Positions 4,600 to 43,000 of a DNA stretch of 60,200 nucleotides are shown here, piece by piece. Made by a program: the position numbers and the translations under genes. The notes under the pieces are model-generated. The model saw only the letters and a list, made by a program, of their open reading frames with translations, had not been told where the DNA came from and searched no databases. Location of the stretch: contig JAAPAO010000156.1 of assembly GCA_013115145.1 (NCBI GenBank), forward strand, positions 1 through 60,200, in the 5' to 3' direction. The first letter of the stretch is position 1, and the number at the start of each line of letters is the position of its first letter. Origin of the DNA: Perkinsus chesapeaki ATCC PRA-425 (lineage: Eukaryota > Protista > Perkinsozoa).

Positions 4600-7288
4600 A
4601 AAGAAAAGCAGCATTTTGGTAGTAGGACGCGCTTGAAACGGTTTAGGGAGCACCATTGGCCTAAAGAGTTCAGGCTGAACTCATCCTACCCACCTCGTGG
4701 GACAGATTCGCCATCCACTGCCGGTCCCTCTCCGGCCTGTTCATTATTTTCATCTGACGGCTCAATCTTCCAGGCAACGACGGACTTCGGGTTCCAAAAA
4801 TGTGTCATTTCAACCTAATGGAGGGAGCTGGTCTACCAGTTACTAGTTCAACCGGGACGCAAAGGTTCGATTCCCCGTAGTTCCAAAACGCTGGCGTTTT
4901 CCATATTCGTTTCCCCTACATGCTTGCCCACCTCCATATTGGTCAAACCTGTAATAAGGTTGCCAAAGGAGGCATCTTTATAAGGCAAGCAGCTTAACGT
5001 CTATTGTCCATCATCAAGCTTCCTTTCAGGAGCTGCCATCAGATCAGCAGCGCTATGCGAAACGTTTACGACAAGCACTCCAGCAAAACTGAAATAACAC
5101 AATGCCGGAATCGAACCCGCGACCATCCGATGTCCTTACTCCCCTTGCTGCGTCTTCCAGAGAGGATTGCTAGTATCAGGTAGAGCCTTCAAAGGCTTAT
5201 TATTTAATTCATCAGAGGCTTCAATGTACGAGATGCGACCAGAATATTTCCGAATGTTAATAATCCTCCATAATGCATATAGAGTGAAGCGAGCCCCACC
5301 CAAGAATCTGAGATGATCTGAACCGAGGTCCACCTGAAGACGAAAACTTTGGTCCGGTATCAAAATTTTGGTGCTAAAGTTGGCCGGGTTTAAACTTTCA
5401 TACACAGTTATTCTCAGAAAAATAATACATATACCATAGCGCTCCACATTCAATATCGGATATCTTTCTCCTGAAAATTCAAGCATATGCTAATGATGAT
5501 GATGATGATGCTAATGATGATCATCGCCTACACGGAAGTCTGTTGGGGCCAAGGAAACCCTCGCGGGTAATTTCCCAAAAATAATGGCCGTTTCAACTAG
5601 ACGAGCTTTAGATAGTTTACCAGTGGAGGAGGACTATTCAAACGAGGATATTCCTACGACGCTCCTCTCCGTGTTACTAGCTCGACTGAGTGCTGCTACA
5701 CGTAAGCCCCACACTGTGAGCATATTACATCAGAAAATAGGCCCCAAGATGCACTGAGACAGGCCAACACACTCGCCTTTTGCTGCTCACCAGTTGATGT
5801 ATCTCGCACGTCTGAGAGATCGGGCTTTGCCCAGGACCACTCGGGGAGGAGTATTACCAATCTGTGCTGCATCAAGGGCAGAAGTACGCCCTCTTAGGAT
5901 TAGCCGGAGAGCAACTTGAAAATCACCGACATACGATTTGGGGTTAAGATCGAACTCCCCCTCCGATGCGAAGGCGCAGCTGCATGCCAGACCATTGCCA
6001 CTACCAGCCAGTAAGAAGCCCAGTGTTATGTTATTGAGTACGGCACGATAGTCTGGTAGCTTGAAGATGCCCTGAAGGTGAACGATAGACGGCTTTGAAG
6101 GGGCTGGATAGTATCACTTGTAAAAAATCATGGACGAGTCCATCTCCTCCGCAAAACACGAATGTATCGAATTTATCAGCGGATTCCATGGCGACTTGTT
6201 TGGTATGTTCAGCGCTCTCAGTAACTACTTCCTCAATCATGAAGCGATCTTGGCAGAGCTCGAATAAAGGCTTGGCTATGCTAGTATACCTATTTGAGAA
6301 GTAGGGGAAAAGAGAGGCATTCTTAACGTTCCTAGACTTGGTAAAACCACTGAGTGAATGACTCCGAGGCTGCTCCAGAATATTCCAGAAGGCAGTGCCT
6401 ATTTAGTGAGAAAACCAGGAAATGTTATTAAAAATATAGCTGCGCAGATGGTAGCAATAGAGCTATAATATAGAAGCATCCTCTTCCTTTATTACATATC
6501 CATAGCTTTGCCTTTGCCGCTGATAGGGTTTATGATGACTAATACTCGTGTTTTAGTAGGGCACTCTGAGCCACTATCAACCATAGTGTCCAAGTCTCCT
6601 AGTGCTGTATGGAGTAGGGCTGCTGCTACAAGATCCACTGAAGGAGGGACAAGCCATTAGGTCCATACTTAGAACCCGATAAATGTGAGAACGGATGTTC
6701 CCAAGATCATCGCATTGTGATCTCCATAAGATACTTCCGAGGTTAGATCGCATTAATGATTTGAAAGCTCACAAGCCATTGTGGTAACGTGTTATATGTG
6801 GTGAAGACTGACAACTCAAAGCGCAGCATGATTGAACGACTACCGGAAGCCCGTCCATTACAATTATTGGTATCCTCTGAATCTAGCCTTTCTAGTACTA
6901 TATCCCTGCGTTGCCGTCCAGCAGACGATGTACAACTCTTATTTTTCATTTCAAGAACGGTAATCTGAATGAACGCCCCCTTTCTATACAATAACGCCTG
7001 CGGAAGGCAACGAAAGATACTTTTTAGGTTGCCATATCGCTACCTGTAAGCTTGAATCACCGTAGTTAACAGCGACTACATCCTTGTACGCCAGTGCATC
7101 ACGAATCTGCCGTGTACTGGCTTCACGAATAACTATCTAATATACAACAATCCAGCCTATCTTTGACAAATCAATGTTACTGTGTCATCTTCAAAGGAGA
7201 CCAGAGCATCATCTAGAATGTCGCCAGCTCGACGAGGAGCCGATCTGTAACGGAAATGGGAGTCAAAGAAGCTGGATAGAAGTTCCAT
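4600..7288 (-). pseudogene. SPHK: Sphingosine kinase copy 2 with in-frame TAG at 5001-5003 (possible nonsense allele or pseudogene)
   Basis: Motifs IINPISGKG, GGDGLVHD, AGSGNGL, ARFTLYALWRI and AVDGE are colinear with copy 1. It reads KLDDGQ*TLSC where copy 1 reads RLNDGQWSLRC. The 3' end is approximate. Confidence 0.7.
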
Positions 7289-18736: not shown

Positions 18737-19650
18737 AAACCACACGATAACTGGACTAGCCCATCCTAGATGGTACCGATCTGTTTTCATTGTGGCTTAT
18801 CTTCGAGATATCTCCTATTGAGTAGTGTCTATTTCTTTTTTCTTGTACAGACGTGCAGAAGGATGTATGCCCTTACTCTTGGGCTTTTACTCAGTTACCT
18901 AGTTTAGCATTCGGTTGAGAGCTCCGAATTCTCGGTATGAGCAGCATACCATGGTCTCCTGCCGAACTTATGCAAGATAGATCCTGGTCGAATCAGATAG
19001 TAGTTGACTTGCGATCGTAAGTTACGACTCGTAACGAATGGACTTACTTGTGCTCAGCGAGCCAGTGGCGAGCCAAAGAGAGATGAAGTTCTAGGTGAAG
19101 TCAATGGCAGGGCTAAACCATCGACTTGAACCTACCGATGATAGCATCGATAGGCATGGCTTCACAGAGGCGAACCGCCTCCACCGAAGGCCACCGAAGA
19201 AGTTATTAACACCGGGTTGGGTGAAGTGCAGATACTCGTCGGAGAAGACTGTGGTCCAGTGAAAGCAAAGGTTCTTGACTCTGATACCAGTGAGACCAAT
19301 GTATCGATATGCTGCTTGACCCATTGTTGGTCGCAAATCCCACTCTAGACGACTTGCCCACGGTTATATTGTGAACGACTATATATCCGATCGTGTGGTA
19401 TACACCTGGTATACACCATCGCATGCAGAGTCCGCCCACTACTGCTAATCGCAATAGCGTCCATGACTCAGAATATAGCAGCTCTTTTACGGCTATGGTG
19501 TTATAGGGTAGACAGGATAATCTGGCGTGAAGTCTCCCAACATTCCGTTGGATTTGTTCAACTCGAGACTGTTCATGACCGGAGAAATATGCCAACGTTA
19601 GGTTTAGAAACACGCACGCAGCTAAGCACAAGTACTTATCGTAGTGATCA

Positions 19651-20604
19651 TTAAAGTCGACTGATGCATGGGCCCTCCCTGCCAGAGGGATTCACGCCGT
19701 GATAGTCAAAGTTCAATAGATGAGCGATTTGCTCCCACCGATCTCCACCAAAGAACATGTTAACCTTACCACACACGTGGACGACAAATGAAGGTGATCC
19801 GAATATGTGGTGCTTCTGAGCATTCAATAACTTAACGAGGATACCGTCACTCACTTCTATTGCTTCTTTAGTCGAGTTCATAAGATCCGCTTTTCCCACT
19901 GATTTCGACTCTTCGATCAACGCATCACCGGCCCCAGTGCTTAGACCAGCGTCCTTACACAGCTTCTGTAAGAAGGTGTTATCTACCAGAGGAGAAGACC
20001 TTATAATAATACAGTGAACCGTGAATTATCTCTTCAAGACTTGATTTCCTACTTATTTCGATAAAGTTGTTCTGGAAGTCCCTAAGACTCCTATCCTCCC
20101 ACAGAGCCCTGAAGGCAGATTCAGTCAGCTTCTCCTTGATCTCTGCGTTCGGTGCAGCGGCCAATAACCTTCACATTGACTATTGTTCTAGAAATGCCTT
20201 AACAGGCTCACCGCTGAACTTGAAGGATCTGACCTGCGACTTGCGAGAAGAAGTTTGTCGGCACAGGAAGCAGTGGAACCTTGAGCATATGAGCGGCTCG
20301 CCTGGAAACGAATAGAGATTCTATCACAGCTGAGAGAGTCGCTGTACTTGAGATCCTCCATCATAAATATTGATTTATTGGGTACAACGGCTGGAGGACG
20401 ATTGCCGCTCCCTTTCATAATACCGCCCAAGAAGACAGGACGGAGTACGACTTCAAGATCCCATATAGTGCCTGAGTTAATACTGTACTGACGTATATTA
20501 AGGTTAGCCTTACGATATTGCTTGAGAGTTTGCCAAGCGAGATAGGTATAAGGCGACACAACGTCATAGAAGAACTCGACCTTGATCTTACCGGGTGGAA
20601 CCAT
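19651..20604 (-). CDS. GSTK1: Kappa-class glutathione S-transferase / DsbA-like (HCCA isomerase family; multi-exon)
   Basis: VEFFYDVVSPYTY, RPVFLGGIMKGSGNRPPAVVPNK and IFGSPSFVV...MFFGGDRWEQI. Confidence 0.9.
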
Positions 20605-20914: not shown

Positions 20915-21905
20915 TTACTGTACGAACTTGTCCTCGCGCACAAGTAGCTTGCGGCCTTCGAACTCGTACTCGTTAAATTTCTCTGACAGTTGAGAACAGG
21001 TCAAAGTTTACGGTACAAGAAACATTCTGCCTTACCAATAGCCTTCGTAGAGCTATCTTCATCCTCAAACAGAACGGTAGCGAATCCCTTGGATCGACCA
21101 TCCCAATTCTCAGCGATATCAACGCGGATTACTTCACCACATTCACGGAAAAGATCTTTAAGATCTTGCCAAGCTGTCCTCCATGGTAACTAATATATAT
21201 AATTATTAAATAATTAATAATTAAGTAATTACATTTCCAACATAAACAAGCCTTCCTTTATCACGTGGTCCAACACGTAAAGGTCTTAAGCCACCTTTAC
21301 CTTTGAATCCTTTAAAACCTTTACCCTTACCGGCAGCTGCTAATAACAATAATATATTATTAAATTAATAATAAACTTACGATATCCCCAATCATTTCCC
21401 CAATCCCAATATCCTTTTCCTTTACCCTTCCCCTTCCCTTTCCCTTTACCCTTCCCCTTGCCACCTTTACCACCGCGTGGAGAGCCTACAACAGAAAAGC
21501 GTTTTTGGCGGGATTGATCGCGCTGATCCTACCGTTTTCGGACCTTGGCTTTGCGGGGCCGCGGTCTTCTCTAACGAATATCTGCCTTTCGCCTAACTTG
21601 GTATCGTTCATTTCCTCGATAGCCTTCTCAACCGAGCTGGCATCTTTGAATTCAACGATTCTAATAATATAATAAGGATGCTGTTATTTATGTTGTATTG
21701 ATGATGATAGCCATTACCCGCATCCTTTAGATTTACCATCATGCCTTGTAAGTATCTCAACAGATACAACTGGACCAACCTTCTTCATATAATCACCAAG
21801 CTCATCCTCAGTGGTCTAAATTAGTTATATAAATATTATTTATAATATTATTATTACCGTCCAATCAAGATTACCAACATAAACACACTTATCCTGCGAT
21901 GCCAT
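20915..21905 (-). CDS. Gbp1/Gbp2-like two-RRM RNA/ssDNA-binding protein with (KG)n linker, copy A
   Basis: [66 protein letters not shown] and GRKLLVREDK; 6 short introns. Confidence 0.9.
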
Positions 21906-21967
21906 ACTTCCTTTTATTATAAGTTATCCGCTACAACGGCTGACAGTCCACGGGACGCCACGTTAAG
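21056..21967 (-). repeat. Left arm of mosaic inverted repeat (tracts 21556-21967 and 21056-21429)
   Basis: Reverse complement matches 29897-30308 (412 bp, 2 mismatches) and 30450-30823 (374 bp, 2 mismatches) by manual comparison. Confidence 0.95.
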
Positions 21968-22280
21968 CAAATAAAACGCCTACAACGACACGTAATTCCG
22001 CACTGCGGAAGGACCATTGAAGGAGGAGCACCGGCGACCGTGCAACGCCACCGGCGTCTTGCAATAGAGACATTGCAAGTGCAGACAAGTTTGCAAGATT
22101 GATAAAGTCACGCGCCGCGAAATGTGTGCGGAGGTGTTAGTCAGCGTCGCCTGTGAATAGAGCCGATATCATTAGTCATGTCAAGTGCGCATTCTTCCGT
22201 ATCCAACTCTCAAGGCCATACAGAGGAGTAAGTGCTTATATATTGATTTGGAGATATTGCAACTGGAACTTTTCCGAGTT

Positions 22281-24831
22281 ATGACACTCGTTCGAAGCAC
22301 TATTGACAATACGATAAACAATAAATCTTTCACCTTACGAAAGGTACCTTAACAAGCCTTAAGAACTCTATCCGATCAATAGGCTGGTATTCTCCCTGAC
22401 TTCCATTCGTCTGGCACGCGGAGAATACTCGAGATGTTCAATGCATCCTGTTCCACCGCAACACACAACTGCTGTCAGGTCCCCGAGCGGTGGTGACAGT
22501 GAGACCGATCCCTTACTGGATCTAGACGAGGCTCTTTCGCGCTATCTTCAACGGTATGGGTATTACAAGCTACAGCGCCGCGACAGTAGAACACACAACC
22601 TTACCTTTGCGTAGTGATGGTAAACATGGTAGGCGGAGAAGTGGACGAAGATAGCAACGGTCCAAGGAGGCAACAGTCAGCGATGCTAATGCTAGGGAAT
22701 ATGAAATCCAGTGACGAGCTATCGGTAGAACACTACCAGTAATCAGGACGATATATAACACCTTGGACAGCAGGTTAAAAGTAGATCAGCGCCGCCATCA
22801 AGAGGACAGCAGCGAAGAGGTAAGGTTACCTTATTAACATATAGGATATACATAATCAGGCGCGCATAGCCAAGAAAAGAGAGCTTTAGGAACACTTACC
22901 GATGTACGAAGCACTAGTAAATAGATGATGGCAGTGCTCAGGCCGAGTATGAGACATTTCTGGCCGACTTGAGAGAAGAAGCAAACGAGTTGCTAGCGGC
23001 ACGCGCGGAGGCGGCTGCCAAGAAGCCCGACGATGGTGAGTTATCGCATTGGGAAAGAATTAACTCACACAGTGTCTTAGATAATTCTGATGATGGCGGA
23101 ACCTTGTCAGATTTTTGGGATTCATCCAAGGGGTAAAAGTCTTGCTCCCGAATGCTCGCAAAATATCTGGTCTATCAGATCTCAGCAGTCAGGCTCAAGC
23201 CTCTACGATCCGGCAGCAGAGGCAGCTAAGGAATATAAAGTCGAAGAGCTCGATATCACGCTAGTTCGTAAGGCCGGTCAGCTACATTGGTCAGACGAAG
23301 ACAATTGCGGTCTCGATCTTGACTGGGCGTCGGTGAGATAGAAGCATCTATTTCGAATGGGGGGCAGGCCTCTCCAGGACCCGTTGACGGTCGAAGAGGT
23401 GGAAGAGGGGAGCACTGGTCAAGAGTGTGGGCTCCGAAATGGAGACGAAATAATGAGAGTAAATGGTTTTAATATACGTGAAGTTGGAGAAGAAAGATTT
23501 ACAGAAATGTTGAAGTGTGATTACCCAGAGGTTGATACTAGTATCCCATAAATCAGATGCCTTCCAATAACACTTACTATCGTACGAAGGACACGAATAG
23601 GCACACCCGCCCAGTCCTCCACGAGAAGTGATTCACCACGCGGTGGCAATGTCCCGCATATCTTTTGCAGTGCGCCCTCGATGGTGGATCTCGGTGGGAT
23701 GAAAAGTACGTCAATGGCAACTTGTTCCGGTGATGATTCAAGTCTGACCTTCGCTCACGTACCCCGGTTGCATCTCTAGAATTCTTGTCGAACAAGGCTT
23801 GTCCTTAACCGTTTTCTATAAAGGTGCCGAGCTCCAGCTGCAAGACCTATCTGACTTCCAACATCTAATCGAGGAGCTCCGAGGCATCCTCCCCTCTCAG
23901 ACCGTAGAGGCGATAAAGATGCAACTGTCAAAACTTCATGACCATTTTATATCATTACGGATACAAGCAAGTTCAACCGTCACGACGTATTCACTGTATC
24001 CTTATTTCTTGTAGTTGGTGGATGCGACAGCCTCCATTAGTGGCTTGCATCGCGAGTTCGAGGAGAATGTCTTGGCGGAAATCCAGCGGATAAAAGTCGA
24101 GTCTAGTAAAGCAAAGACCACCACACCTGTGGCCGCGGAGAACACCTCTGGTGGGCCACGGCTGGTCGGATGCGATCCCTAAAATTTATTTGTCAGAAGA
24201 GAAGAATTGGAAAAAAACCGAAACAGTGGTGATGCCCGGTGGAGGATCTGCCAAGGTTCGCAAAGGCAGGATAGTAGTTCATAAAAAAGATCTCGAGGAG
24301 GTGAAGACAGTGCCACAAAGACTTTGTTGTCCAAGGCTTCTGTATCTGCTCAGGCATTGAAGTCCTCACGGTTAATTGATTCAGCGGCCCATCCATCTTC
24401 AAGTTTGTCATGTTCTTATGAACCACCTTTAATAACGGATGTATGATAGTTACCGTCGCCGCTTGCGTTACAGTACCTAACAAGACGCAATATATGAAGT
24501 CATCTGCGAGGAAACATAACATCACTCATCATGCATCCCTTTGATCAGCATAGGATAAAAAAAACAAATACGGATCAAAGCGAGTCTAGCAAAGCACCAT
24601 AGCGTTATTGAAGATCATCTTGAAGATTCATCTTCAGAAGATGAATCCTCACAAAAGGCTGCTGCCCCTGTCGTCGCTAAGTACTCTCCTGGCGGGCTAC
24701 CACTTGTCTCACTCAATGATAGAACCTTGTCGTATCAGGAGAGAAATGTACAAAAAAAGGCAACTATGGTGATGATAGGCGGCGGATCTGTTGGGGTTCG
24801 CAAAAGCAGAACTACAGTTCGTAAAAAGTAA
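22281..24831 (+). CDS. PDZ-domain-containing protein (multi-exon; boundaries approximate)
   Basis: Exon 23357-23551 reads LTVEEVEEGSTGQECGLRNGDEIMRVNG (PDZ betaC-alphaA-betaD). Flanking coiled exons are present and the basic C-terminus ends RTTVRKK*. Confidence 0.55.
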
Positions 24832-25925
24832 CTCGAGGAAGTAAAGACGGCACCTAGAAGAAGTACGTTATCGCTCCGATCTAGGATCTCTAACGGTTGG
24901 TCGCCTTTTGGGTTCGAGACCAACGACACCAAAAAGATGGTCGGGACTCCTGGTGATACCTAGCGGAGCTGAGTGCAACGGATTTCTAGCCTCAAAGACG
25001 TTGCGGTCTTCTTGTAGTTATCCACTCCAATTGGGAGCAACGGTTTTCATTACTTTTGCGACCCGTTATATGTACTCTCAGACTGCCCTACGTGGCGAAC
25101 GATTATTTTGTAAATAGTTGCGTGCCAAAAGGGTTTACGTAGAACGTGCATGAGGGTGTTGTCTTACTGAGATCCATGTGCGGCCTCAGAAGGTCAACTA
25201 CGGAACATTATGTGGACTATAAAATCTCCTCTCTCAGTCAGGCTTGAGCGTATATTGTCAAACTGACAATTTCACACTGAAATGTAACGTCCATCGTGGA
25301 GTGAAACTTTGTGCGATTGGGAGTGTGATTTGCAGACTCATGTGGGCGCTGCTCGACACGCCGCCTACATACTCTAGGTCAGGGTATGTATCCGAGAATC
25401 CAGGGTACGATGCGCAGGTTACCCTGCGGCTCCGACCACGCGACAGAACCTTGCGGAGCTAAAACCGTTGGGTTCGATTGCCTCGGGCCACACTTTGTTC
25501 GGGCTTCAGTGGGCATATCCACGTGGGCTCACTTGAGGGAAGATTTGCGCAGCAATGTGATGAGCTCTGTTGAACCTCGTAACAAGGTTCTTGCCTTCCG
25601 GGGAAGGGGGTGATTCTCGCTTAGGGAGCAAAGGTGTGCTTTTTGACGATGGATCATATCCATTGACCGCAGTAACGAACTCTACGCTAGAAATATGAGA
25701 TTTGCAACAAGGGGGTCCATAATGGATCATCCAGTGAGTGGGACGATCACAAAAGGACAATGACCGAGATAGTTAACTCCTTTCAGAGCTGATAAGATCA
25801 CTCTGATCTCCGTTAAGAACTCGTGAACCGTTAAGAAATCTATAACAAGTCTAATGTTATAATGGTCACTCATATTATAAGTCGCTTGAGACCTTCGATA
25901 GAGCAAATGAAGCAAAATCAGCTTA

Positions 25926-26153
25926 TCAAAGGCATACACGAACCCTGCAATCGGGAGTCTGAGTGCAATGGTAGAGCTTTCCGAGGTGCGGCTCAGATTG
26001 ACATTCACTATCATCTTTACAGTTCTTCGTACACTGGCCAGCATAACATATTGGTACTGAACTTGGGCAGTCTGAGCACTTATTGCAGTAAACGAAGGCG
26101 ACTGTTCTGACCAACATAGTAGCAATACAGAGGAGTAGAAGATTGGGCGACAT
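25926..26153 (-). CDS. Small secreted cysteine-rich peptide (75 aa, 10 Cys in mature part)
   Basis: Hydrophobic leader MSPNLLLLCIATMLVRTVA, then YCNKCSDCPSSVPICYAGQCTKNCKDDSEC...HCTQTPDCRVRVCL. Confidence 0.65.
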   Translation of the reverse strand: MSPNLLLLCIATMLVRTVAFVYCNKCSDCPSSVPICYAGQCTKNCKDDSECQSEPHLGKLYHCTQTPDCRVRVCL

Positions 26154-28399
26154 TTTGGCTGAGTAAGAGTAGACCTGTCAAAAAGTAAGCATCTCCAAGG
26201 AGAAGGCATCTCCATTTTGGATCTTCATCAGGCTCCACAATTATTGGGGAGCTTAATATAGGCTTCAACTATGAACCGATTTCGACGGGGCCCTTAACCG
26301 ACTCGACAAGACGCCACCATACTCTCATGGGGACCCTCCGTATCTCTACACGTGGGATGTTGTCCAGCTCACTTTTTCTATCCTGTGGGTTCAGGGAAAT
26401 GCGAGATCTTTCGATAGGCTGGAGGGAGTAGACCACCGTAACCCCGCCGGAAGTGTAATTCACCCTCGTCCCGTTATCAATTTATAGATGAGAGGATCTC
26501 CCTGAATCGTATGGCACGCGTATACCTTTCCGCCACTCACAGAGGCAAGTGCCACCTGAGAATCCTCAACGATAATCTCAGAGTGGAAAGCATGGTCATT
26601 TTGGACAGATGTTCAAGAACCATCTCAATGCTTCAGGCTCATATGAGCTTCAGTTCGAATTACTACGCTTCTTGGAAGGCGGGTTCGGATTAACTCTCAC
26701 AATCGAAAGAGGAGCATCTCATACCCATCATGGAGCAGCGGCCGACTGCTTGGTCCTGTAGGCTGAGAAGATTTTATACCCCTGCATTACACAAAAGAGA
26801 TTTGCCGGAGTAATTCCTCTCAAAATTTGTATACTTCTTGCTTTCGTTCTGTCTGGGCACTTGCCGTAGTGAGGCAAGTACCGATGACATCGCCATGACA
26901 GTGCCGATGACACATATTGGCGATGGTGGTTGGCCGCTCCGTGGTTGGAAGACTGTACTTGGTCTTGCTCCGTCTTCATTAATCCGAAGATTCGAACTCA
27001 TTGCCAACGTGATCCTTCTAAGAAATGTGATGCTACGTACGGCCTGTGTCGGGAGCAAAGCGGCTTGTAGCCTGTATATCGGACAGCTCAGTAGTTAGCT
27101 CCGTACCAGACAGGCATTTTTGTAATCCAAAATTTGGATGCCGTGGACCAAGGCACCTATGCCCTTTCGATAGAATCTTCTTGTCGGCTGAAGGCTATGC
27201 TTCATGTTTGGCATTGCTCAAGAAGAAGTATAGTGATGTCCCGATTGAGTATTTGCCAACACACGAGGAACTCATCCGCTGTCCAAACTCGCTTTCTAGA
27301 AGGCGGAGGATGCCCCATTTCTCAGATACGATCTCATGTGACCTGCTCTGCCCTTTTTGTCTTCCTCAGATGCGACTTAGTGTTGCCTTTAAGTGAATGA
27401 GGTTTACCCAGCACTAAAAAATACGTGTTTCAAGCGAGGTGTCAACGTTTCAATTATTGTGCTTCGGTTTTCAAGAAGACTTGTGAAAATGTACTCACCA
27501 ATCGCGTTCAAAGTCCTGTATCATGGAAAGCAACTGTAACGGTGGAAGTGAGCCCTGCAGAACCACGCTAGGACTGAAGTTAGCACTGTAGGTTTTGCCA
27601 CCCAGCGAAATACCTCCGCGGGGGTGACATCACACAAAAACCGATCGCTCTGTTTGGGGACATCGGGGGCACAAACTCAAAGGCTAGCCGCTAGTAAACC
27701 AGCGCTTCAGTAGTTTTCACATAATGTTAGCGTTAGCAATTGAGACGACGGCTGTATCCCTGCGGAGACGCGTGAGTAGCGGCGTCCGTTACGGATTAAG
27801 AATGGGCAATTTCCAGTCCAAGCAATCCTCTCAATCAACCCAGACTGAAGACGTGTCTACCTCCTTCAGAACAGACTGGTGGTTCAGCGTCGGGTTCCAT
27901 ACTCGGCGTTCACAGCATTAGGCTGACCCATGTTCGCTTGGCGGTGCTGACGATGATAGTGGTGTACTTTCACCTGTACTGTCGCTCGATTCAGTTTCTG
28001 TCCCCCTACCTCCTCCCCACAATTAATCCGAGGTTTCAACAATCGGAATCCACGCTTACGATAATATAACCTCATGAGAGCAGCTGCACGAATGTACGTA
28101 GGTGCACAGCAGCAATGCGGAACGGTAACGTCATACTGCCTATCGCCAATGAATCTTCATGAATGGTTTACAACGCAAAGGCCCCGATAGGATATAAACA
28201 ACAGGTTCGAATGAAACCACGAAGTGAACATGCCACTTTGTATTCGCTTCATTGCTGCTGCCTGTTAGATGTACTCATCGAAGCGGACGGGTTTCTGAAA
28301 GCAATATGCCATGCATGAACACCAACCAGCCCAAAGCACTTGTGTCGTGATCATTCAAACAAGTTTCTCTAGGTGATGCAGTCTCACTTTGCTTGCCCC

Positions 28400-29139
28400 T
28401 ACTTCGAACAGGCGTTCTTCCTCGGAGTACTATTCAGGTGGTTACTAAGAATATAATGTGTATCCTTCCTTTTATTTGTAACCATTGACCTGATGCTCAA
28501 TGGTAACGATGATATCGATGGTATTGTTCTCACTGAAGGAAGGAATCGCGCTTCCATTCTTCCCGTAGCAGTTGTCCTCGACAAACGGGGTCACACTTGG
28601 CCAACTTCACCCTGTAATGAGAATAAAACAGCTATTAACAAGAAAATGTCTAGAGTTATTTTTAACGTTAATTTTAGTAGAGATGCAACTGACGCAAGAT
28701 AATCCCACTTTTTGACGGAATCCGAAGCTGCTCGCGGGAGGGAGTTTCGCCTAGTACTCGGTACGGCCGACCTGCAGGCGGCACCGATGCGTTAGTGAAG
28801 CAAGCTCTGCATACCTGCACGTTGGTGGTACTGCTGGACTTGATAGGTTCACCGTTTTGTGTGACTCTGCACTGAGGCGCTTACACTGCGGCAGTTCGTA
28901 CTGCCTCGGACCTGGCGCGCTACGTCGACGAGCAGGGCCTTCGTCTACTGTCTCTTTGTCAGCTCCTCGTCTAAATCCCATTGTTTTCAGATCGCCACAG
29001 TTGGTTACGTTGCTGGTTACGTTGTATTATGAATTTCATAGGCATCGTCATCAATATAGACATACGGCTTATCATCAGCCTGTCTGAGGATGTCAGCGGT
29101 GTTATCTGGCACGATACGGTACGGGGGTAATCGAGACAT
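28400..29139 (-). CDS. Hypothetical spliced gene of unknown function
   Basis: Plausible exon MSRLPPYRIVPDNTADILRQADDKPYVYIDDD followed by a GT-AG intron and an open exon (RGADKETVDEGPARRRSAPG). The 3' end is unresolved. Confidence 0.3.
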
Positions 29140-29896
29140 TGGTAACGGTCGTGGATACCGATTATGACGCAATGAGCGGTTTAACTGTCACGTTGAGGAT
29201 GGCAAGTAAGAATTGACTCATTCACTTAAATCAGCAGGACATGTTGAAAGGTGGCGTTTTAAGCTATGGCTCCTCACGGCCCAGTTCACACTTCACAGCA
29301 AAAACAAAATGAAGCTGGGGAGCTATGCAAAGGATGCCACACCAATGTTAGAAAAAGCTTTAACGTAGAATAAGGTAGTACGGACCAGGAAAGAGTGTGG
29401 CGACGAACCAAGGTGTCCGTCGGAAAGAGCTGGTGGCGGATCCATAATGAACACAATGCAGATGACGTAAACCAGATACCAATAGTTGATCAAGTATAGT
29501 GCAGAGGGCCGATGGGAGCAGATAGCAGATCTTGTGACGAAGGGGATCAGAGGGGACGAAGGGACGGTCAAAGAGAAAGAAGGAGACGGAAGAAGAAAAG
29601 AAAGAAGAAGGGCACTGAGAATCATTATCACTAATACGCATACTACATCACTGACTAATGATTGCAATACTTAGATCAGTAGCTAGGATATAGCCTAGCG
29701 GTTTCTTCTACACAAAAAGATATCTTGGCGAGCGAGAACGGCGGTGAGCCTTCGCACGCCACAAGAGATCTTTCTTAGAGATCTTGCACACTTGCCTATC
29801 CTTACCTTGCGGCGTACGCATGCACGCATGGTCTCATCTTTATGGTCGGTAAATGTGATGTTGTCGCTAGAGTACCTTGCGTGACTTAGTTGTTTT

Positions 29897-30823
29897 CTTA
29901 ACGTGGCGTCCCGTGGACTGTCAGCCGTTGTAGCGGATAACTTATAATAAAAGGAAGTATGGCATCGCAGGATAAGTGTGTTTATGTTGGTAATCTTGAT
30001 TGGACGGTAATAATAATATTATAAATAATATTTATATAATTAATTTAGACCACTGAGGATGAGCTTGGTGATTATATGAAGAAGGTTGGTCCAGTTGTAT
30101 CTGTTGAGATACTTACAAGGCATGATGGTAAATCTAAAGGATGCGGGTAATGGCTATCATCATCAATACGACATAAATAACAGCATCCTTATTATATTAT
30201 TAGAATCGTTGAATTCAAAGATGCCAGCTCGGTTGAGAAGGCTATCGAGGAAATGAACGATACCAAGTTAGGCGAAAGGCAGATATTCGTTAGAGAAGAC
30301 CGCGGCCCAGTGAAACCAAAGGATCTTGATTCCGATAGCGGTAAGATAGATGTATCGATATGCTGCTGCTCAACTACTTTATCCTCACAGGCTCCTATTA
30401 TGGTGGAAAGGGAAAAGGGAAGGGTAAAGGGAAAGGGAAAGGGAAGGGAAAGGGTAAAGGAAAAGGATATTGGGATTGGGGAAATGATTGGGGATATCGT
30501 AAGTTTATTATTAATTTAATAATATATTATTGTTATTAGCAGCTGCCGGTAAGGGTAAAGGTTTTAAAGGATTCAAAGGTAAAGGTGGTTTAAGACCTTT
30601 ACGTGTTGGACCACGTGATAAAGGAAGGCTTGTTTATGTTGGAAATGTAATTACTTAATTATTAATTATTTAATAATTAGATATATTAGTTACCATGGAG
30701 GACAGCTTGGCAAGATCTTAAAGATCTTTTCCGTGAATGTGGTGAAGTAATCCGCGTTGATATCGCTGAGAATTGGGATGGTCGATCCAAGGGATTCGCT
30801 ACCGTTCTGTTTGAGGATGAAGA
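29897..30823 (+). repeat. Right arm of mosaic inverted repeat (tracts 29897-30308 and 30450-30823)
   Basis: Near-identical to the reverse complement of 21556-21967 and 21056-21429. Confidence 0.95.
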
Positions 30824-30950
30824 AGGCGCCACTAAAGCCATTGGTAGTAATATATTTAATTATCTATTATTATTCGCAACTTTAGAGAAGTACAACGAAT
30901 ACGAATTTGAAGGGCGGAAGTTACTTGTCCGCGAGGATCAGTTCGTATAA
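29959..30950 (+). CDS. Gbp1/Gbp2-like two-RRM protein with (KG)10 linker, copy B
   Basis: Same RRM motifs and intron positions as copy A; ends GRKLLVREDQFV*. Confidence 0.9.
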
Positions 30951-31237: not shown

Positions 31238-32107
31238 TCAGCATGATCTAATATCCTTCACCACACGGCAAGGATTCCCTCCAGCAACAACGTGAGAAGG
31301 AATATCCTAAAGGCAGCAGCAACTCCGTCTACTGGATACAGAATACCAGCGTACTTTAGTGACAATACTGCCAGCTTCGATAACACTACCATCACCTATA
31401 TTAACACCAGACATAATAACCGTGTTGGCGCCAATGCAGACGTCATCCCCAATCTTGATAGGGCGACCAAACATAGCCCATGTTGCTCTGGCTGATGCCG
31501 CGCGACTAACAGAGAGCCAGAGATCGAAAAAGGATAGCACTTTTCGAGTACGGATGATCAGCGGCATAGAAATGAACACCCTGGCCACAGTATACCTGAT
31601 GGGTTGGTCGGAAAGGGGAAAAGGAGTTAAAAGGGACACTTACGTTGTTACCAATCTCCACAAGGGAGGCATCGAGAATCACTAATTTGGGCTCCGCTAC
31701 GAATAAATCACCAATACTGATATTGAAACCAAAATCGCAGCGGAATGGCGGTTCTATGTCGGGCCGACTGCCACAGGAACCGAGTAGATCTGAGGATAAT
31801 AGAAGATCGTAATAAGAAGATAATAATCGTCGAGTGCACTAGCTTCAAACTGATAGTGTAGTACAGTTCACCGATATTGTGATTGCTGCTGGCTACTTCA
31901 TAATCAGCATTAGTCGTATAATACGGTATCGGTACCTTGTAGAATAGCCTCACGACGGGCGGTGGAGTTATGGTTGTTGGAAACTTCATTATATGCTCTA
32001 CATAAGTCCTTTGCTCTGGTGTACCATTGCCGGAATACTTCAGTCTCTAGCTTAAATAATTTACCATTTCGCATAAGAGAAAGATACTCTTCTTTGGATG
32101 CCTTCAT
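31238..32107 (-). CDS. Maltose/galactoside O-acetyltransferase-like (hexapeptide repeat), copy 1
   Basis: MRNGKLF N-terminal Mac-like helix, [29 protein letters not shown]...[21 protein letters not shown]. Confidence 0.85.
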
Positions 32108-32200
32108 TATTACTGTAAAACTTATCACCAATTATTGATGAACATGACGTCATTCAAGCTCGGAAACGGCGAACATGTAAGCTACAGACATGTCTAGAAG

Positions 32201-33044
32201 CTAGTCGCTTTTAGGATGGGTGTTGTCCGCTAGAAACCGCTGCTCTTCATCGGTGGGCTCCGTCGGTGCTGGCTTGATCACTTTGCAAGGATTACCAGCA
32301 GCGATCATACCATCGGGGATGTCCTGAACAACGTTCATACTGAGCAGAGGATGAATTTTATTGGAATGCTGACCTTAGTAACAACACTGCCGGCACCAAT
32401 TATACATCCAGATCCAATAGTAACACCAGGTAGAACTACAGTACGTCCACCAATCCATACATCATCACCAATGGTAATTGGTGCACCGTACTCGACGAAC
32501 GAAGACCTCGCTATGGCAGAACGCCTGAGCGTTGGGGCTAGAGAGCATCATCACAATCGATACTGCTTACGGATGATCAGCGGCATAGAGGTGTACGCCT
32601 GGTCCGAAAAATACCTGATTAGTGATTCAGAACTTTATGTCTGAATAATGAATGAGAATGAAACATCCCTTACATTATTGCCAATACGAACAGGGCAGAT
32701 ATCCAAGATGACCAAGTCGTAATTGGAGTAAAAATTATCACCAATATGAATATTAAAACCATAATCACATCGAAAAGGCGGTTCAATAAACGGCCCATCA
32801 CCACATGCTCCGAGACCATCTAAAGTACGTCGATGGAAGAGCTCAAGAGTGGCAGAATACCTTGCAGCATATCTTTCCTGATTTCAATAAAATCGTCTGT
32901 ATCCTCCTCTGTGCTGTTGAACCTTCTACACCAAGCCTTAGCTTTGGCTCTAAGTCTTATTAGCCCCTCTTCCATCGGGAGATACAGTTCACCCCGCGTC
33001 ATACGCTGCAGGTTATCCTCATCCGAAACTATCCTACCCGACAT
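32201..33044 (-). CDS. Maltose/galactoside O-acetyltransferase-like, copy 2
   Basis: [38 protein letters not shown]...[23 protein letters not shown]. Confidence 0.9.
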
Positions 33045-33711
33045 TAACGATCAAATAGTTGGAACTGATATGGACAGGTCAGCAGGGATGAAAACCGCTG
33101 CCATGGCCAGTTTATGGGCACATGGGTGCACACTGCATAAGGTACATAGTGCCCATCAGTGGGAACTTCGGGGCCAAGACCTAAAGCTTGATAAGGAAGG
33201 GATAGGGCGCCAGTGAAAGCGTGATGCTGCGGTGACCCTAGGATGTATTATACACCTTCTAACGACCGTAGTATACCGTCTTCATAGATTAGAGCTTTTA
33301 ACGCAAATCAAAGCTAAGCATCGATTGGAGCACTTTAGCGAATGTCAAATACCTCTTTGTCGCCCCTAGTTCACGGACACCAGTTTTTTAGCTTCCGCAC
33401 AATCATTGTGTTGCACAATTTTACGGAACAAATTCGACGAGGACCTTCTTCCTGGAATGGAGTCAACGTTTTACCATTTCTATCGCACACTCGGCGGCCG
33501 TTGAACGCTCCGCTCCCGCTGATAGAGTCTGTGCATTTGGTTAGGGTTCAGGCAAGGGTGTGAATAGGAAAGTTATAAAGAGTTTAAGTATTCCCATTTG
33601 TCATCGATTTAGCTGAGGACCCAACTGCAGCACAACACATTGCTATTTGTTAAACTTAACTTCTGTTAATATGAACGTCAACTGAATGACTTCGGTACAG
33701 AGGGAGCTGCC

Positions 33712-34567
33712 TTAGCTGCTGGAGTAAGGTATACCATGCTTTTCGAAAAAATCCTTCTCTTCCTCTGTAGGCTCCTTAGGTGCTGGTTTGATAGGTTTAC
33801 AGGGATTACCAGCAGCGATCATGCCCGGTGGGATATCCTGAAACAATATAGGATACTTTCTTATGGCTGCCCAGAATGCTGACCTTAGTAACAACACTGC
33901 CGGCACCAATTATACATCCAGATCCAATAGTAACACCAGGTAGAACTACAGTACGTCCACCAATCCATACATCATCACCAATGGTAATTGGTGAGCTGAA
34001 TTCGACACAGGTAGCCCGCCCGGCAACGGAACGCCTGCGAAGAGGACATTAAGCTTCAACATGAAAGAGAAGAACCTACGGGTGCTCAGCTGTGTAGAGA
34101 TGGACACTGGGCCCTAGTAAAACCTGAGAACATACCTAATGATCAAGGGGTACATCTGGGCTTACATTATTGCCAATACGAACTGGGCAACCATCAAGGA
34201 TGGCCAATTCATAATTAGCATAAAAACCATCACCGATGTATACATTGAATCCATATTCACATCGGAAGGGTGGCTCTATTACAGGATCCTTACCACATGA
34301 ACCAAAGAAACCTGATACACGAACCTTAAAGTCGACTTACAAGCCATATTGTAAGTATCAACTGACCGGATGGAGCGTACCTCTCATCAGCTCTTCACGT
34401 TCTGGACATGGACCAGTTATAGAATCATCAGTAGAGTTGAATCGACGACACCAAAGCCTCGCTGCTGTTCTTAACTCATCTAACCTCTTCATACTAGGGA
34501 TATGCAGTTGACCATTGGTCATACGTTTAAGGTTATCGTCCTCGGATAGGGTACTATTGGTATTCAT
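33712..34567 (-). CDS. Maltose/galactoside O-acetyltransferase-like, copy 3
   Basis: [32 protein letters not shown]...[23 protein letters not shown]. Confidence 0.9.
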
Positions 34568-40010: not shown

Positions 40011-43000
40011 TTACGATGAGGCATGGAACATCCGTGGAGGGTCAATAACTTCCCTCAAGAGCATCGTCGCGAATGAGCCGGACGGTAGATGAAACTGTAG
40101 AGGATGATAACAGACGAAGTCACTGTTATGACTATTACATCTAGGACGAGATTGCAGGTGGTAGACGTACCGTTAATTTCCTCCGAGGCGCTGAAGAAGG
40201 TGGGACGTATGATTAAAGGGCGCAGGTAGCAGTCTATTCGCGCTTTGTATCCCAGTGCTCGAGACACATCACAACTCTCGGGGTTATTCAAAACCCTCTC
40301 GGTTATCTCCCCTCGTTCGACTGATCTTTCCAGTATGCCACGATACCTGCGTGCCTGCATCGATACCCCAAATGAGCGTATCTTACGTACAGTTGATGTG
40401 GGTCGATGCCGAGGTGGATGAGAGGGGACTTCCCCTCAATGCGGTGGCCCCAGGTTGGTATAATAACGTTTTGTATTTCGTGCCTGAGTTCAGTCGAGCT
40501 CATCGCCCTTTACCGAGATAATGTAGAACTACTCATCCGCACTACTGTTTGTTTCAAATAGCAAAACTTCCCCAGAAACTGGTGACAGCAATACGTCACC
40601 GTCCATAAGCTCAAGGCCACCCTGGCGGATACGCCTAAAGTAATAGAATGGTCTATATAATAGGAGCGCTTCAGACCTACTGTGAAGCTAACTGGTTCCA
40701 AAGATATGACTGGTAAGCGCTCAAATAGAGAAGGGTCACATTGTGGGGAACGCCTCCCTTGAGAGCTATTCGATATCGGTCTGGGCCACGATTCTTCGTT
40801 AGGAGTAAGAGCACGCTCTTCCATCTGAGTAACGACGAAGCTTATTGTTGGCAGAAATACATCGTGGGTGTGTAGCTCAGCGGTAGAGCGGCTGACTGCA
40901 GATCAGCAGGTCCTCGGTTCAAATCCGGGCGCGCCCTTTTTCGTGAGCCCTACATTTTCGCATTGGAGTCAAGCTGATCAAGGCTCCCTAGTAGCTGCAG
41001 TGCCTTGGCAATGTCTCCATCGGAGCTCCACTGTTTCATAACCTGACAGAATCGGCAGTTATATACTCACCTGGTGATGTCAGGGAGCTAAGATCAACGA
41101 GCGATCAAAGAATACTCAACTCGGCCGCCGGAGATCGGTCCGATTCTGCAGGCGACATAAGCAGCTTTACGGCCTTCTCATACTGTCCTGATACGATCGC
41201 ACCGCCGATATCGACCTGCGCCGAGCATAATGGCTGGTAAGGAGAACCACAGCAGGACTCACGTTGCAGTGGCGTTCTTCACCGTGGTTGGGGTTGATAC
41301 CGAAGCGCTGTAGGCCATAGTAGTTTATGAAACCCTGACTTTCGATTGATGACAGTCTCTTGCCAACTCCTGGCTCAGCGCCCCGAATACGGACTCGGAA
41401 GCAGTTCCTGAAAATCACCAATGGCCCAGCAAGACGTGAAATTATTCTTACCCGAGTGAGAGACCTTGACGTAGCTTAGCAGGTCCTGTGTTAACCTCGA
41501 AGTTGCCAGCCTCACACATGCGAGAAGCACCACGGCTTATGTCATCGAATGCCTCACGTATCCGTTGCTCGTCGTGTGTGGTTGGCAGTGTCATATACCT
41601 GATTTTATCAAACCTGGGGATGGTATCCCCAGCTAGTCTCACTGGTAGGTCACTCCAAACCTATCCTTGGTGCCTCCATAATGCAGTGAATTGCTCGGCA
41701 GCCGGAGGTTCTGCTCCACAGCGCGCTGTAGGGCATTCGTATCCCAGCCAGTCTTCTTGAGTACGAACCTCCAACGCTGCGCATTGAACAAACCGACTGG
41801 GGAGTGCTTCCGCTGCCAACTGAGTAGAACTTGCGGAGTGGCCTGCACTAGACGATATCATCAATCAAACAACACAGTTGATCTTACGTTCGCTTTTTTC
41901 ATGACTGAGACCTCTAAGTTCTCAAACTGCTTTGTCAACTGTCGCAAGAACAGATCACTGTTTGTTCCACGAAGTAGCCGTATAGTTAAGCTGCCGTCGT
42001 TGAACCTAGCAAATCTCATTGTGGTGGTAGTCGAGCAACAGGAGAGTACCCTCGAAGAATGAATCGCATTAACTCCACAGCATCCTCATGGTGAACGCAT
42101 TCAATAAGGAGCTCGGATCTCTGAGCATCTGTGGCCCCGTAGAACATTACTTCATGAGAGAGAATCTTCATGGGTATCATAGCGAACGTCTGAAATAAGG
42201 GTCGAATCCTAGTCAAGAAGGGCACCTAGTTGTCATCACTTGACGGAGCTGCCAAGCTATTGCTCCTCGAATCTTATAGACATCCGCAAGATCGTTCCCT
42301 GGATCTGCACGGTGGAAGGTGCACAAAAGCCCCCTGACGTCTCGTCTTGACTTTTTGCCCTAACAAATAGAGCATCACGGTCAGCAGCTGAAGACACAGT
42401 CGGGAATACAGTTGCCCTTTTGACAAACTGCTCGATTTTAGTTATAGCGTCCTCGCTGCATTGCGCAGATATATAGGACGAAGCCGCTGAATCCCCAAGA
42501 GTGTATCTGAAGGGCCATGATCTACTCCCCGAGGCTGAACCTACGACGATAGTATAATACCGTACTGTAGAAAGATAATGAGTAGGAGACCACACGATTC
42601 CATCGACGTCTGTTGTTATACTTCACCAATACCACACCTACCCTTGCTCAAAGGCGTCAAGCAAGCTTTGGGTTGAATCCTCCCCTGCTTGAAGGGACCG
42701 TGGGTCGACAGCAGTAGAGCGCGGCTCACTGAACTAATCGCAGCTGCAAAGATATCAAGAGCAGCTTACCCCTCCTCGAGATGGAGCTGTTCCACTGCTG
42801 CCCAGCAAGGCCTCATAGGTTCGATACGCATCCGCGCCACTTTTCCGTCCATGCCGACCTCTCTGACTTCCCAGTCCTCCATCTGTCAGAAAAGCTCTTC
42901 CGGTTGTAGGAGGTGCTTCCTCACTTTGCCTCTGATAAAGCCTCCGCTGCCTTTGGGATCGATATGTTCCTCGATGCCGACCCTCTGGTTGAATCGGTCA

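Follow-up and report, generated by a model that had tools for sequence, protein, structure and literature searches.

Two inverted two-RRM genes face each other across 7.9 kb

The analyzed stretch of DNA (60,200 nucleotides, hereafter "the window") harbors two copies of a two-RRM gene, designated A and B, in a head-to-head orientation: copy A occupies the minus strand at 20915-21905 and copy B the plus strand at 29959-30950, with their 5' ends facing each other across 7.9 kb. Both are intact seven-exon genes. The introns of copy A begin with GT, end with AG, and are 41-57 nt long.

20915..21905, minus strand: copy A, two-RRM gene, 235 codons plus stop
21905-21858, 21815-21718, 21660-21533, 21485-21381, 21339-21233, 21189-21036, 20982-20915, minus strand: exons of copy A, from an exon-by-exon reading of the frame
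29959..30950, plus strand: copy B, two-RRM gene, 238 codons plus stop
29959-30006, 30049-30146, 30204-30340, 30391-30498, 30540-30646, 30690-30843, 30886-30950, plus strand: exons of copy B

Matches to Pfam RRM_1 were found in exons 2, 3, and 6 of copy B; the domain assignment of copy A is made via these exons, to which its own are nearly identical. The solved RRM structures nearest to copy B are those of hnRNP M and yeast Hrb1. Proteins of the GBP2 or hnRNP M-Hrb1 type have two RRM_1 domains, a length of about 240 amino acids, and a glycine-rich linker, and a Gly-Lys linker is present in both A and B. A and B are old paralogues, and the protein they are predicted to encode is small and GBP2/hnRNP-M-like, carrying two RRMs plus a Gly-Lys linker. 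The GBP2 of Plasmodium falciparum, another alveolate, has 246 amino acids and two RRMs, and it binds the telomeric G-strand and G-quadruplexes (PMC8902816). The products of A and B (235 and 238 amino acids) resemble it in size, in the two RRM_1 domains, and in an hnRNP M/Hrb1-type RRM2, whereas the Gly-Lys repeat plus Trp-rich linker may be additional to what PfGBP2 carries. The likeness is one of size and domains; orthology to GBP2 is putative, as is nucleic-acid binding by A and B.

The following features lie between and beside the two genes; tract 1, which delimits the interval, is defined in the next section.

21968..29896, no strand: 7.9-kb interval enclosed by the inner edges of the two tract 1 copies, which a crossover would invert
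about 22178-24182, plus strand: PDZ-domain gene (Pfam PF00595 on the PDZ exon)
25926-26153, minus strand: gene for a Cys-rich small protein (75-aa open reading frame)
29391-29769: 369-bp dispersed element, inside the 7.9-kb interval
19651..20604, minus strand: gene for a kappa-class glutathione transferase (DSBA-like; Pfam PF01323), adjoining copy A

The PDZ gene and the Cys-rich peptide had been named in the original prediction as the contents of the interval, and the PF00595 match and the 75-aa frame bear this out. The latter has at least seven paralogues in the genome. The glutathione transferase, used as the taxonomic anchor, has its best matches in proteins of Perkinsus olseni and P. marinus, at 65-68% identity. 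Pfam scans of the local open reading frames returned RRM, PDZ, and DSBA domains only.

Two near-identical tracts interrupt otherwise diverged genes

A repeat search of the window returned two pairs of inverted arms (21545-21974 / 29890-30319 and 21033-21462 / 30417-30846). The limits of the tracts within them were taken from a MAFFT alignment with coordinate mapping.

B 29897..30308, plus strand, equal to A 21556-21967, minus strand: conversion tract 1, 412 bp, 2 mismatches, GC 0.383; the 62 bp preceding the ATG, exons 1-2 with introns 1-2, and the larger part of exon 3
B 30450..30823, plus strand, equal to A 21056-21429, minus strand: conversion tract 2, 374 bp, 2 mismatches, GC 0.356; last part of the Gly-Lys repeat (exon 4), introns 4-5, exon 5, and the larger part of exon 6
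21056..21967, minus strand: both A-side tracts (21556-21967 and 21056-21429) and the intervening unconverted A-type linker and intron 3 (21430-21555)
30309..30449, plus strand: unconverted core of B (linker end of exon 3, intron 3, start of exon 4), 56% identical to A
30824..30950, plus strand: 3' part of B, unconverted, from the tail of exon 6 through intron 6 and exon 7, 61% identical to A 20915-21055

Inside both tracts the copies are 99.5% identical, whereas elsewhere in the genes identity is 56-61%: 4 of 786 positions differ in the tracts vs. 120 of 289 outside them (Fisher p=4e-72). Three of the four mismatches are intronic (B 30040 and 30170 in tract 1, and 30680, in intron 5, in tract 2), and the remaining one, at B 30589, is synonymous. 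The same-amino-acid codons of the tract exons show zero A/B differences. The tract edges are sharp and fall inside exons rather than at splice sites. Could selection on the protein have preserved this identity? Purifying selection cannot explain it, because 62 bp of 5' flank and as many as four introns lie within the tracts. The mosaic described in the original prediction, two tracts of 412 and 374 bp with two mismatches each that take in four introns and about 60 bp of promoter, was exact. The strong divergence it reported for the linker with intron 3 and for the last intron and exon was also recovered: the core carries a 9-bp A/B indel, and intron 3 cannot be aligned between the copies.

The copies are old

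Outside the tracts, divergence between A and B is near saturation. In exon 7, 9 of the 17 codons for the same amino acid differ between the copies, and the flanks of the two genes are only 37-41% identical. The family in the genome assembly consists of A, B, a third copy unlinked to either (paralogue C), and a single relic. Identities over exon 7, which lies outside the tracts, are 45/57 for A-B, 45/57 for B-C, and 40/57 for A-C. Because the A-B distance outside the tracts equals the distance to the unlinked paralogue, A and B are old copies.

19186..19316, plus strand: decayed B-type relic, 76% identical to B 30237-30367, in the orientation of B and outside copy A

The relic comprises the second half of exon 3, a B-type linker, and the start of a B-type intron 3. 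The relic, paralogue C, and the compositional shift of the tracts described below were all absent from the original prediction.

The tracts are shifted toward A/T

Nowhere in the window is GC lower than in the tracts: every 400-bp segment with a GC content of 0.37 or less across the 60 kb falls within genes A and B. GC at third codon positions (GC3) is 0.33 inside vs. 0.58 outside the tracts in A, 0.33 vs. 0.47 in B, and 0.63 in C. Among 102 tract codons that specify the same amino acid, the third position is G or C in 33 in B and in 64 in C. These codons hold 34 strong-to-weak and 6 weak-to-strong differences between B and C (binomial p=8e-6); they are unpolarised, C being a paralogue and not a true ancestor, and the direction of change is for this reason inferred from composition. 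GC-biased gene conversion, a candidate that calls for G/C-enriched tracts, was rejected on these counts.

The introns are more strongly shifted than the codons. Their GC content is 5-28% in the tracts, 19-49% in the non-tract introns of A and B, and 27-38% in C; within copy A, intron 3 has 49% GC and introns 1, 4, and 5 have 7-10%. Replacement positions show no shift (35 vs. 35 of 78), and exon 3 within tract 1 shows hardly any (GC3 about 0.55). The composition breaks at the tract edges in both copies. Since the tracts contain introns, codon selection is ruled out as the cause of the shift; introns hit harder than silent codon positions, with replacement sites spared, point instead to a mutational or repair-driven process. 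That process must also have been long-lasting rather than one recent event, because bringing intron GC from the 27-38% seen in C to about 7% requires replacement of most G/C sites. The strong-to-weak differences in the tracts include 7 transversions among the 34. Those of the C-to-T kind showed no CpG or CpA context (next base G in 6, A in 5, C in 4, and T in 2), and CpG is not depleted (observed/expected 1.18).

Discussion

We hold with good confidence that non-allelic gene conversion between the old paralogues A and B is the best reading of the mosaic. The original prediction had favored recurrent conversion between old paralogues over one recent duplication. The data side with it, as the sharp-edged tracts run across introns and so extend their identity over neutral sequence, while the near-saturated remainder and the equal A-B and B-C distances establish the age of the copies independently of the tracts. 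We infer that conversion was recurrent and that it caused the AT shift.

Under this reading, repeated intrachromosomal conversion would overwrite two segments, one from position -62 to the middle of exon 3 and the other starting where the Gly-Lys repeat ends and stopping shortly before the end of exon 6, and would hold both at their present identity. Conversion would never, or no longer, reach the indel-rich linker and intron 3 or the 3' end, leaving them to diverge to near saturation. All free positions in the converted segments (introns and silent codon positions) have moved toward A/T, and replacement positions have not. Either conversion itself or the repair synthesis accompanying it may favor A/T in this Perkinsus genome, the opposite of GC-biased gene conversion; the push could come from an AT-favoring mismatch-repair bias in heteroduplex or from error-prone repair synthesis whose strong-to-weak spectrum is independent of context. 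The same recombination would now and then invert the 7.9 kb as a side effect, with no purpose-built switch involved. More speculatively, a homology-dependent process acting genome-wide might push every repeatedly converted tract to A/T, with the 7.9-kb gene block perhaps also toggled; the evidence for the shift comes from one locus and two tracts.

Two other accounts of the tracts deserve consideration. An already AT-rich copy B may have donated sequence to A in one or two recent conversions, in which case conversion would not be the cause of the AT shift. The tracts are indeed of equal age, with two mismatches each, and outside them B is somewhat more AT-rich than A (GC3 as given above; intron 6, 19% vs. 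42% GC). We nevertheless consider this account improbable, for B outside the tracts does not approach the tract values (40% GC in intron 3 vs. 5-10% in tract introns; a GC3 of 0.57 in exon 7 vs. 0.11 in exon 5), the B-type relic is not AT-poor, and the compositional break coincides with the tract edges in both copies. A second account, that multi-mapped reads homogenised two paralogues in the consensus during assembly or polishing, is very improbable. The assembly is admittedly a draft of 3544 contigs, with 100-N gaps on other contigs. However, the window is free of N, the unique interior and flanking sequences each occur once in the assembly, and the four copy-specific differences persist inside the tracts; these mismatches show that A and B were assembled separately. 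The edges, moreover, fall sharply to about 58% identity, where mis-mapping could not begin, and extreme AT composition is not a product of polishing.

Does the interval between the genes invert? The original prediction proposed an invertible, shufflon-like cassette. Its inverted geometry was right: the block is flanked by inverted paralogues apparently homogenised by conversion, as in a flip/flop. The assembly, however, holds a single arrangement, with no contig carrying the alternative junction, and judged from this geometry the cassette is possible as an arrangement only. Passive re-inversion, in which the homogenised segments now and then recombine non-allelically and flip the 7.9 kb, perhaps polymorphically among strains, is compatible with conversion as the best explanation, and we entertain it tentatively. 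Crossover resolution of conversion between inverted repeats happens sometimes, and here the 412- and 374-bp arms, at their high identity, lie 7.9 kb apart. In yeast, continual homogenisation of inverted paralogues accompanies recurrent inversion (PMC9731477). The one orientation in the assembly weighs against it, as do arms roughly 10 times shorter than the 4-kb yeast repeat. A programmed switch at the locus, with a regulated, shufflon-like inversion that swaps distal promoters and linker/C-terminus combinations to yield protein or expression variants, is highly unlikely. The geometry alone speaks for it, in that crossing over within tract 2 would reassort the linker and C-terminal types. Yet the contig has no tyrosine or serine recombinase gene (PF00589 gave 22 matches, all on other contigs, and PF00239 gave none), and in place of short specific crossover sites the repeats are long gene segments. 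The alternatives would differ only by a few C-terminal residues and a short linker. Furthermore, both genes are complete and share the proximal 62 bp of 5' flank; each having its own 5' flank, no flip is needed for expression.

The common view is that gene conversion raises GC content, a bias invoked to account for the base-composition landscapes of many eukaryotes. If the converted tracts of some lineage are its most AT-rich local DNA, that lineage would be a natural counter-example and would offer a handle on repair bias; an inverted pair of converting paralogues lacking the AT shift would be ordinary. The locus is a clean case, with introns inside the tracts, unconverted segments as internal controls, and the unlinked paralogue C as an outgroup. 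Its inverted arrangement also bears on structural polymorphism in Perkinsus, a parasite of shellfish with little-known genome dynamics.

Comparison with known systems

In bacterial shufflons and invertible switches (R64 Rci/sfx and Hin/hix, for example), a dedicated site-specific recombinase acts on short crossover sites. The present locus resembles them in its inverted repeats, which lie on either side of a segment that would exchange gene ends if flipped, but it has neither the recombinase nor the sites. In the repeat-induced point mutation (RIP) of fungi, the only changes are C-to-T and G-to-A, with a preferred dinucleotide; the copies diverge and the genes are destroyed. A homology-dependent AT shift of duplicated DNA is a point of likeness. 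Here, by contrast, there are transversions, no CpA or CpG preference, and no depletion of CpG, while the copies are identical in the tracts and their frames are intact. RIP-like repeat mutagenesis was ruled out on these grounds.

On yeast chromosome XIV, a 24-kb region lies between the inverted paralogues YNL018C and YNL034W (Salzberg et al. 2022, PMC9731477). There, too, unrelated genes are bracketed by inverted paralogues kept nearly identical by conversion, and inversion is a recurrent by-product of the homogenisation (PMC9731477). The yeast repeat is continuous over about 4 kb, whereas ours consists of two short tracts split by an unconverted core and shifted to A/T; both yeast orientations occur in many strains and species (PMC9731477), in contrast to the one orientation found here in one assembly. 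Primate X/Y palindromes undergo arm-to-arm conversion with a GC bias (PMC8981503). They share with A and B inverted copies that are more than 99% identical through intrachromosomal conversion and a composition altered relative to the surroundings. The direction differs: conversion raises GC in the palindromes (PMC8981503), while the converted tracts of P. chesapeaki have the lowest GC of their 60-kb window.

Organization of the paired genes

A repeat search and an alignment with coordinate mapping confirmed an inverted repeat at exactly the position given in the original prediction. The inverted arms found by repeat search of the window are 21545-21974 / 29890-30319 and 21033-21462 / 30417-30846; they correspond to two head-to-head two-RRM genes, here called A and B.

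20915-21905, minus strand: copy A, 7 exons, 235 codons, intact (exon-by-exon reading)
29959-30950, plus strand: copy B, 7 exons, 238 codons, intact (exon-by-exon reading)
B 29897-30308 = A 21967-21556: tract 1, 412 bp, 2 mismatches, both intronic (alignment with coordinate mapping)
B 30450-30823 = A 21429-21056: tract 2, 374 bp, 2 mismatches, 1 synonymous and 1 intronic (alignment with coordinate mapping)
left of A: gene for a kappa-class GST (DSBA-like)

The 5' ends of the genes point toward one another over a 7.9-kb interval. All introns are of the GT..AG type and measure 41-57 nt; in a scripted check, the summed exon lengths were a multiple of three and the joined frame was without a stop. 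Exons 2, 3 and 6 match Pfam RRM_1, the nearest solved RRMs being those of hnRNP M and yeast Hrb1; in the linker, a Trp-rich motif comes after a Gly-Lys repeat.

The two copies differ at 4 of 786 positions within the tracts vs. 120 of 289 outside them (Fisher p=4e-72); identity is 56% between the tracts, 61% at the 3' end and 37-41% in the flanks. The tract edges lie within exons, with the nearest splice sites 32 and 20 nt away. Identity takes in introns and the 5' flank, and beyond the edges divergence is near saturation. In the core that separates the tracts there is an indel of 9 bp, and the intron is unalignable. The window contains no Ns (count 0).

Relatives and relative age of the copies

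A and B were searched as separate exons rather than as a spliced protein. Relatives were sought with exon 6 in a representative protein library and with a profile of two metagenomic two-RRM proteins to which the window exons were added as separate rows. Neither search yielded a full-length Perkinsus orthologue; the matches of both were dominated by proteins with 3-4 RRMs. When every exon was compared with 275 retrieved proteins by local BLAST, nothing exceeded 71% identity at exon length; higher values occurred only over 17-19 residues. Two protein pairs, each forming one 90% cluster, were noted in the set P0081/P0153 and P0087/P0151: those of Chytriomyces sp. MP71 are on different contigs, and those of Umbelopsis sp. 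AD052 have consecutive accessions on one contig. Two aligned members of the Umbelopsis cluster failed to align with RRM proteins, and its kinship to the A/B family is doubtful.

In the genome assembly (G000; 41.7 Mb, 3544 contigs), the family consists only of A, B, an unlinked third paralogue, C, and one relic.

G000 contig C3289 (piece L003), 1326-2213: paralogue C
window 19186-19316, plus strand (B's orientation): relic of a B-type RRM gene, 131 bp, 76% identity, outside A and downstream of the GST gene

C has 88% protein identity over exon 6, and its DNA is 74-78% identical. Its composition is normal (GC3 0.50-0.62), it carries a long acidic/Ser-rich C-terminal tail, it is without the linker intron of A and B (their intron 3), and it has an in-frame intron 6 of 48 nt. 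Over exon 7, which lies outside the tracts, identity is 45/57 for A-B, 45/57 for B-C and 40/57 for A-C, and of the 17 codons for which A and B encode the same amino acid, 9 are different; A, B and C are thus of about equal age. Within the tracts, the same count for A vs. B is zero in exon 2 and in that portion of exon 6 which the tract covers, the sole coding difference across both tracts being the synonymous one, in exon 5. The relic retains the end of exon 3, a linker of B type and the first part of the B-type intron 3; since these stand at 76% identity, a B-type copy decayed there later than the A/B split. The relic carries no information on inversion.

Base composition of the tracts

The most interesting feature of the locus is a shift toward A/T that is limited to the tracts and is clean in introns. 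It was tested at the A/B locus only.

Base composition inside and outside the tracts
GC3, copy A: 0.33 (59/177) inside; 0.58 (32/55) outside
GC3, copy B: 0.33 (58/177) inside; 0.47 (27/58) outside
GC3 at 102 same-amino-acid codons inside the tracts: 33 in B; 64 in C
Intron GC inside: 5-10% in introns 1, 4 and 5; 26-28% in intron 2
Intron GC for comparison: 42-49% (A) and 19-40% (B) outside; 27-38% in C

Differences between the tracts and C run 34 strong-to-weak vs. 6 weak-to-strong (p=8e-6). Coding stretches elsewhere in the window show GC3 of 0.42-0.56, and in the whole window every 400-bp stretch with GC <=0.37 lies within genes A and B. Replacement positions are without the shift (35 vs. 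35 of 78), which is weakest by the right edge of tract 1 (exon 3 GC3 ~0.55). The shift is therefore confined to free sites, is strongest in non-coding DNA and tracks the tracts.

Codon selection was rejected as its cause, as introns are the most affected and replacement positions are unshifted. Neither CpG nor CpA forms a context for the shift and CpG is undepleted, which rules out CpG deamination and, together with the 7 transversions among the 34 strong-to-weak changes, RIP. To bring intron GC from the 27-38% of C to ~7%, most G/C sites would have to be replaced; this argues for long-running, recurrent conversion over one recent event.

Origin of the mosaic

Identity over introns and 5' flank, edges inside exons and near-saturated surroundings are together incompatible with purifying selection, with one recent duplication, with retrocopying and with exon shuffling. 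Conserved intronic RNA genes were ruled out as well: the only Rfam match in the window is a tRNA (40866-40937). The remaining explanation, non-allelic gene conversion, is the one originally proposed, and these sequence patterns support it. The indel and unalignable intron of the core would be heterology of the kind that halts or splits conversion tracts. Our literature search found no paper that deals with gene conversion in Perkinsus; conversion biased toward A/T was mentioned only here and there, for the most part in organelles.

No comparable mosaic paralogue pair was present in a 168-kb sample of the genome. Directly right of B, a tandem array (31549-34299) holds three related units of ~1-1.5 kb with 64-89% identity, among which no homogenised tract was observed. 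The only 99% repeat of the sample is on piece L011 (G000 contig C8), where 703-897 and 6893-7087 belong to a ~270-bp unit present in two copies, one with a 136-bp insertion upstream. Both carry a Perkinsus-type spliced-leader exon (TCCGTAGCCATCTTGGCTCAAG, core CATCTTGG) that matches PmaSL1 (PMC3101222, PMC9399869); they are probably SL RNA genes, and were dropped as a mosaic pair. From this exon and the best relatives of the GST (P. olseni and P. marinus proteins, 65-68% identity), this eukaryotic genome is assigned to the genus Perkinsus; a diatom, a fungus and an oomycete were rejected as its source.

The interval and its possible inversion

The interval separating the two genes contains the following.

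23357-23551: Pfam match PF00595 of a PDZ-domain gene
25926-26153, minus strand: Cys-rich ORF, 75 aa, signal-like N-terminus
29391-29769: dispersed element, 369 bp, directly upstream of B

The Cys-rich ORF belongs to a small family, with at least 7 genomic paralogues (31-52% identity; contigs C3467, C1787, C978, C3347 and C854). Copies of the dispersed element occur at G000 C2826:69888-70256 (100%) and on C3114 (94%). Its two ~72-bp ends have 100% matches on >15 other contigs, several of these matches being at the end of a contig; the element showed neither inverted nor direct terminal repeats.

The geometry of the original prediction holds: with a crossover in tract 1, 21968-29896 would be inverted, and with one in tract 2, linker/C-terminus combinations would be swapped as well. 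The shufflon-like switch built upon it is unsupported. Such a programmed device is unlikely, indeed very improbable: the assembly has a single arrangement, whose unique interior and flanks are single-copy, the window's contig (C619) carries no gene for a tyrosine or serine recombinase, and both genes are complete, with a common proximal 5' flank. At least 20 tyrosine-recombinase (PF00589) open frames, probably of Crypton/DIRS-type mobile elements, occur on many other small contigs; no serine recombinase was found in the genome search. The realistic version of the cassette idea would be a passive flip-flop of the 7.9-kb interval, as on yeast chromosome XIV, in which a 24-kb region is recurrently re-inverted through its homogenised inverted paralogues (PMC9731477). 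By that analogy inversion is conceivable here, but the lone arrangement in the assembly leaves it doubtful.

Comparison with known systems

In size and architecture, A and B are like alveolate GBP2, of which PfGBP2 has 246 aa and two RRMs (PMC8902816). The homogenised tracts depart from GC-biased gene conversion (cf. PMC8981503): their shift runs in the opposite direction, toward A/T.
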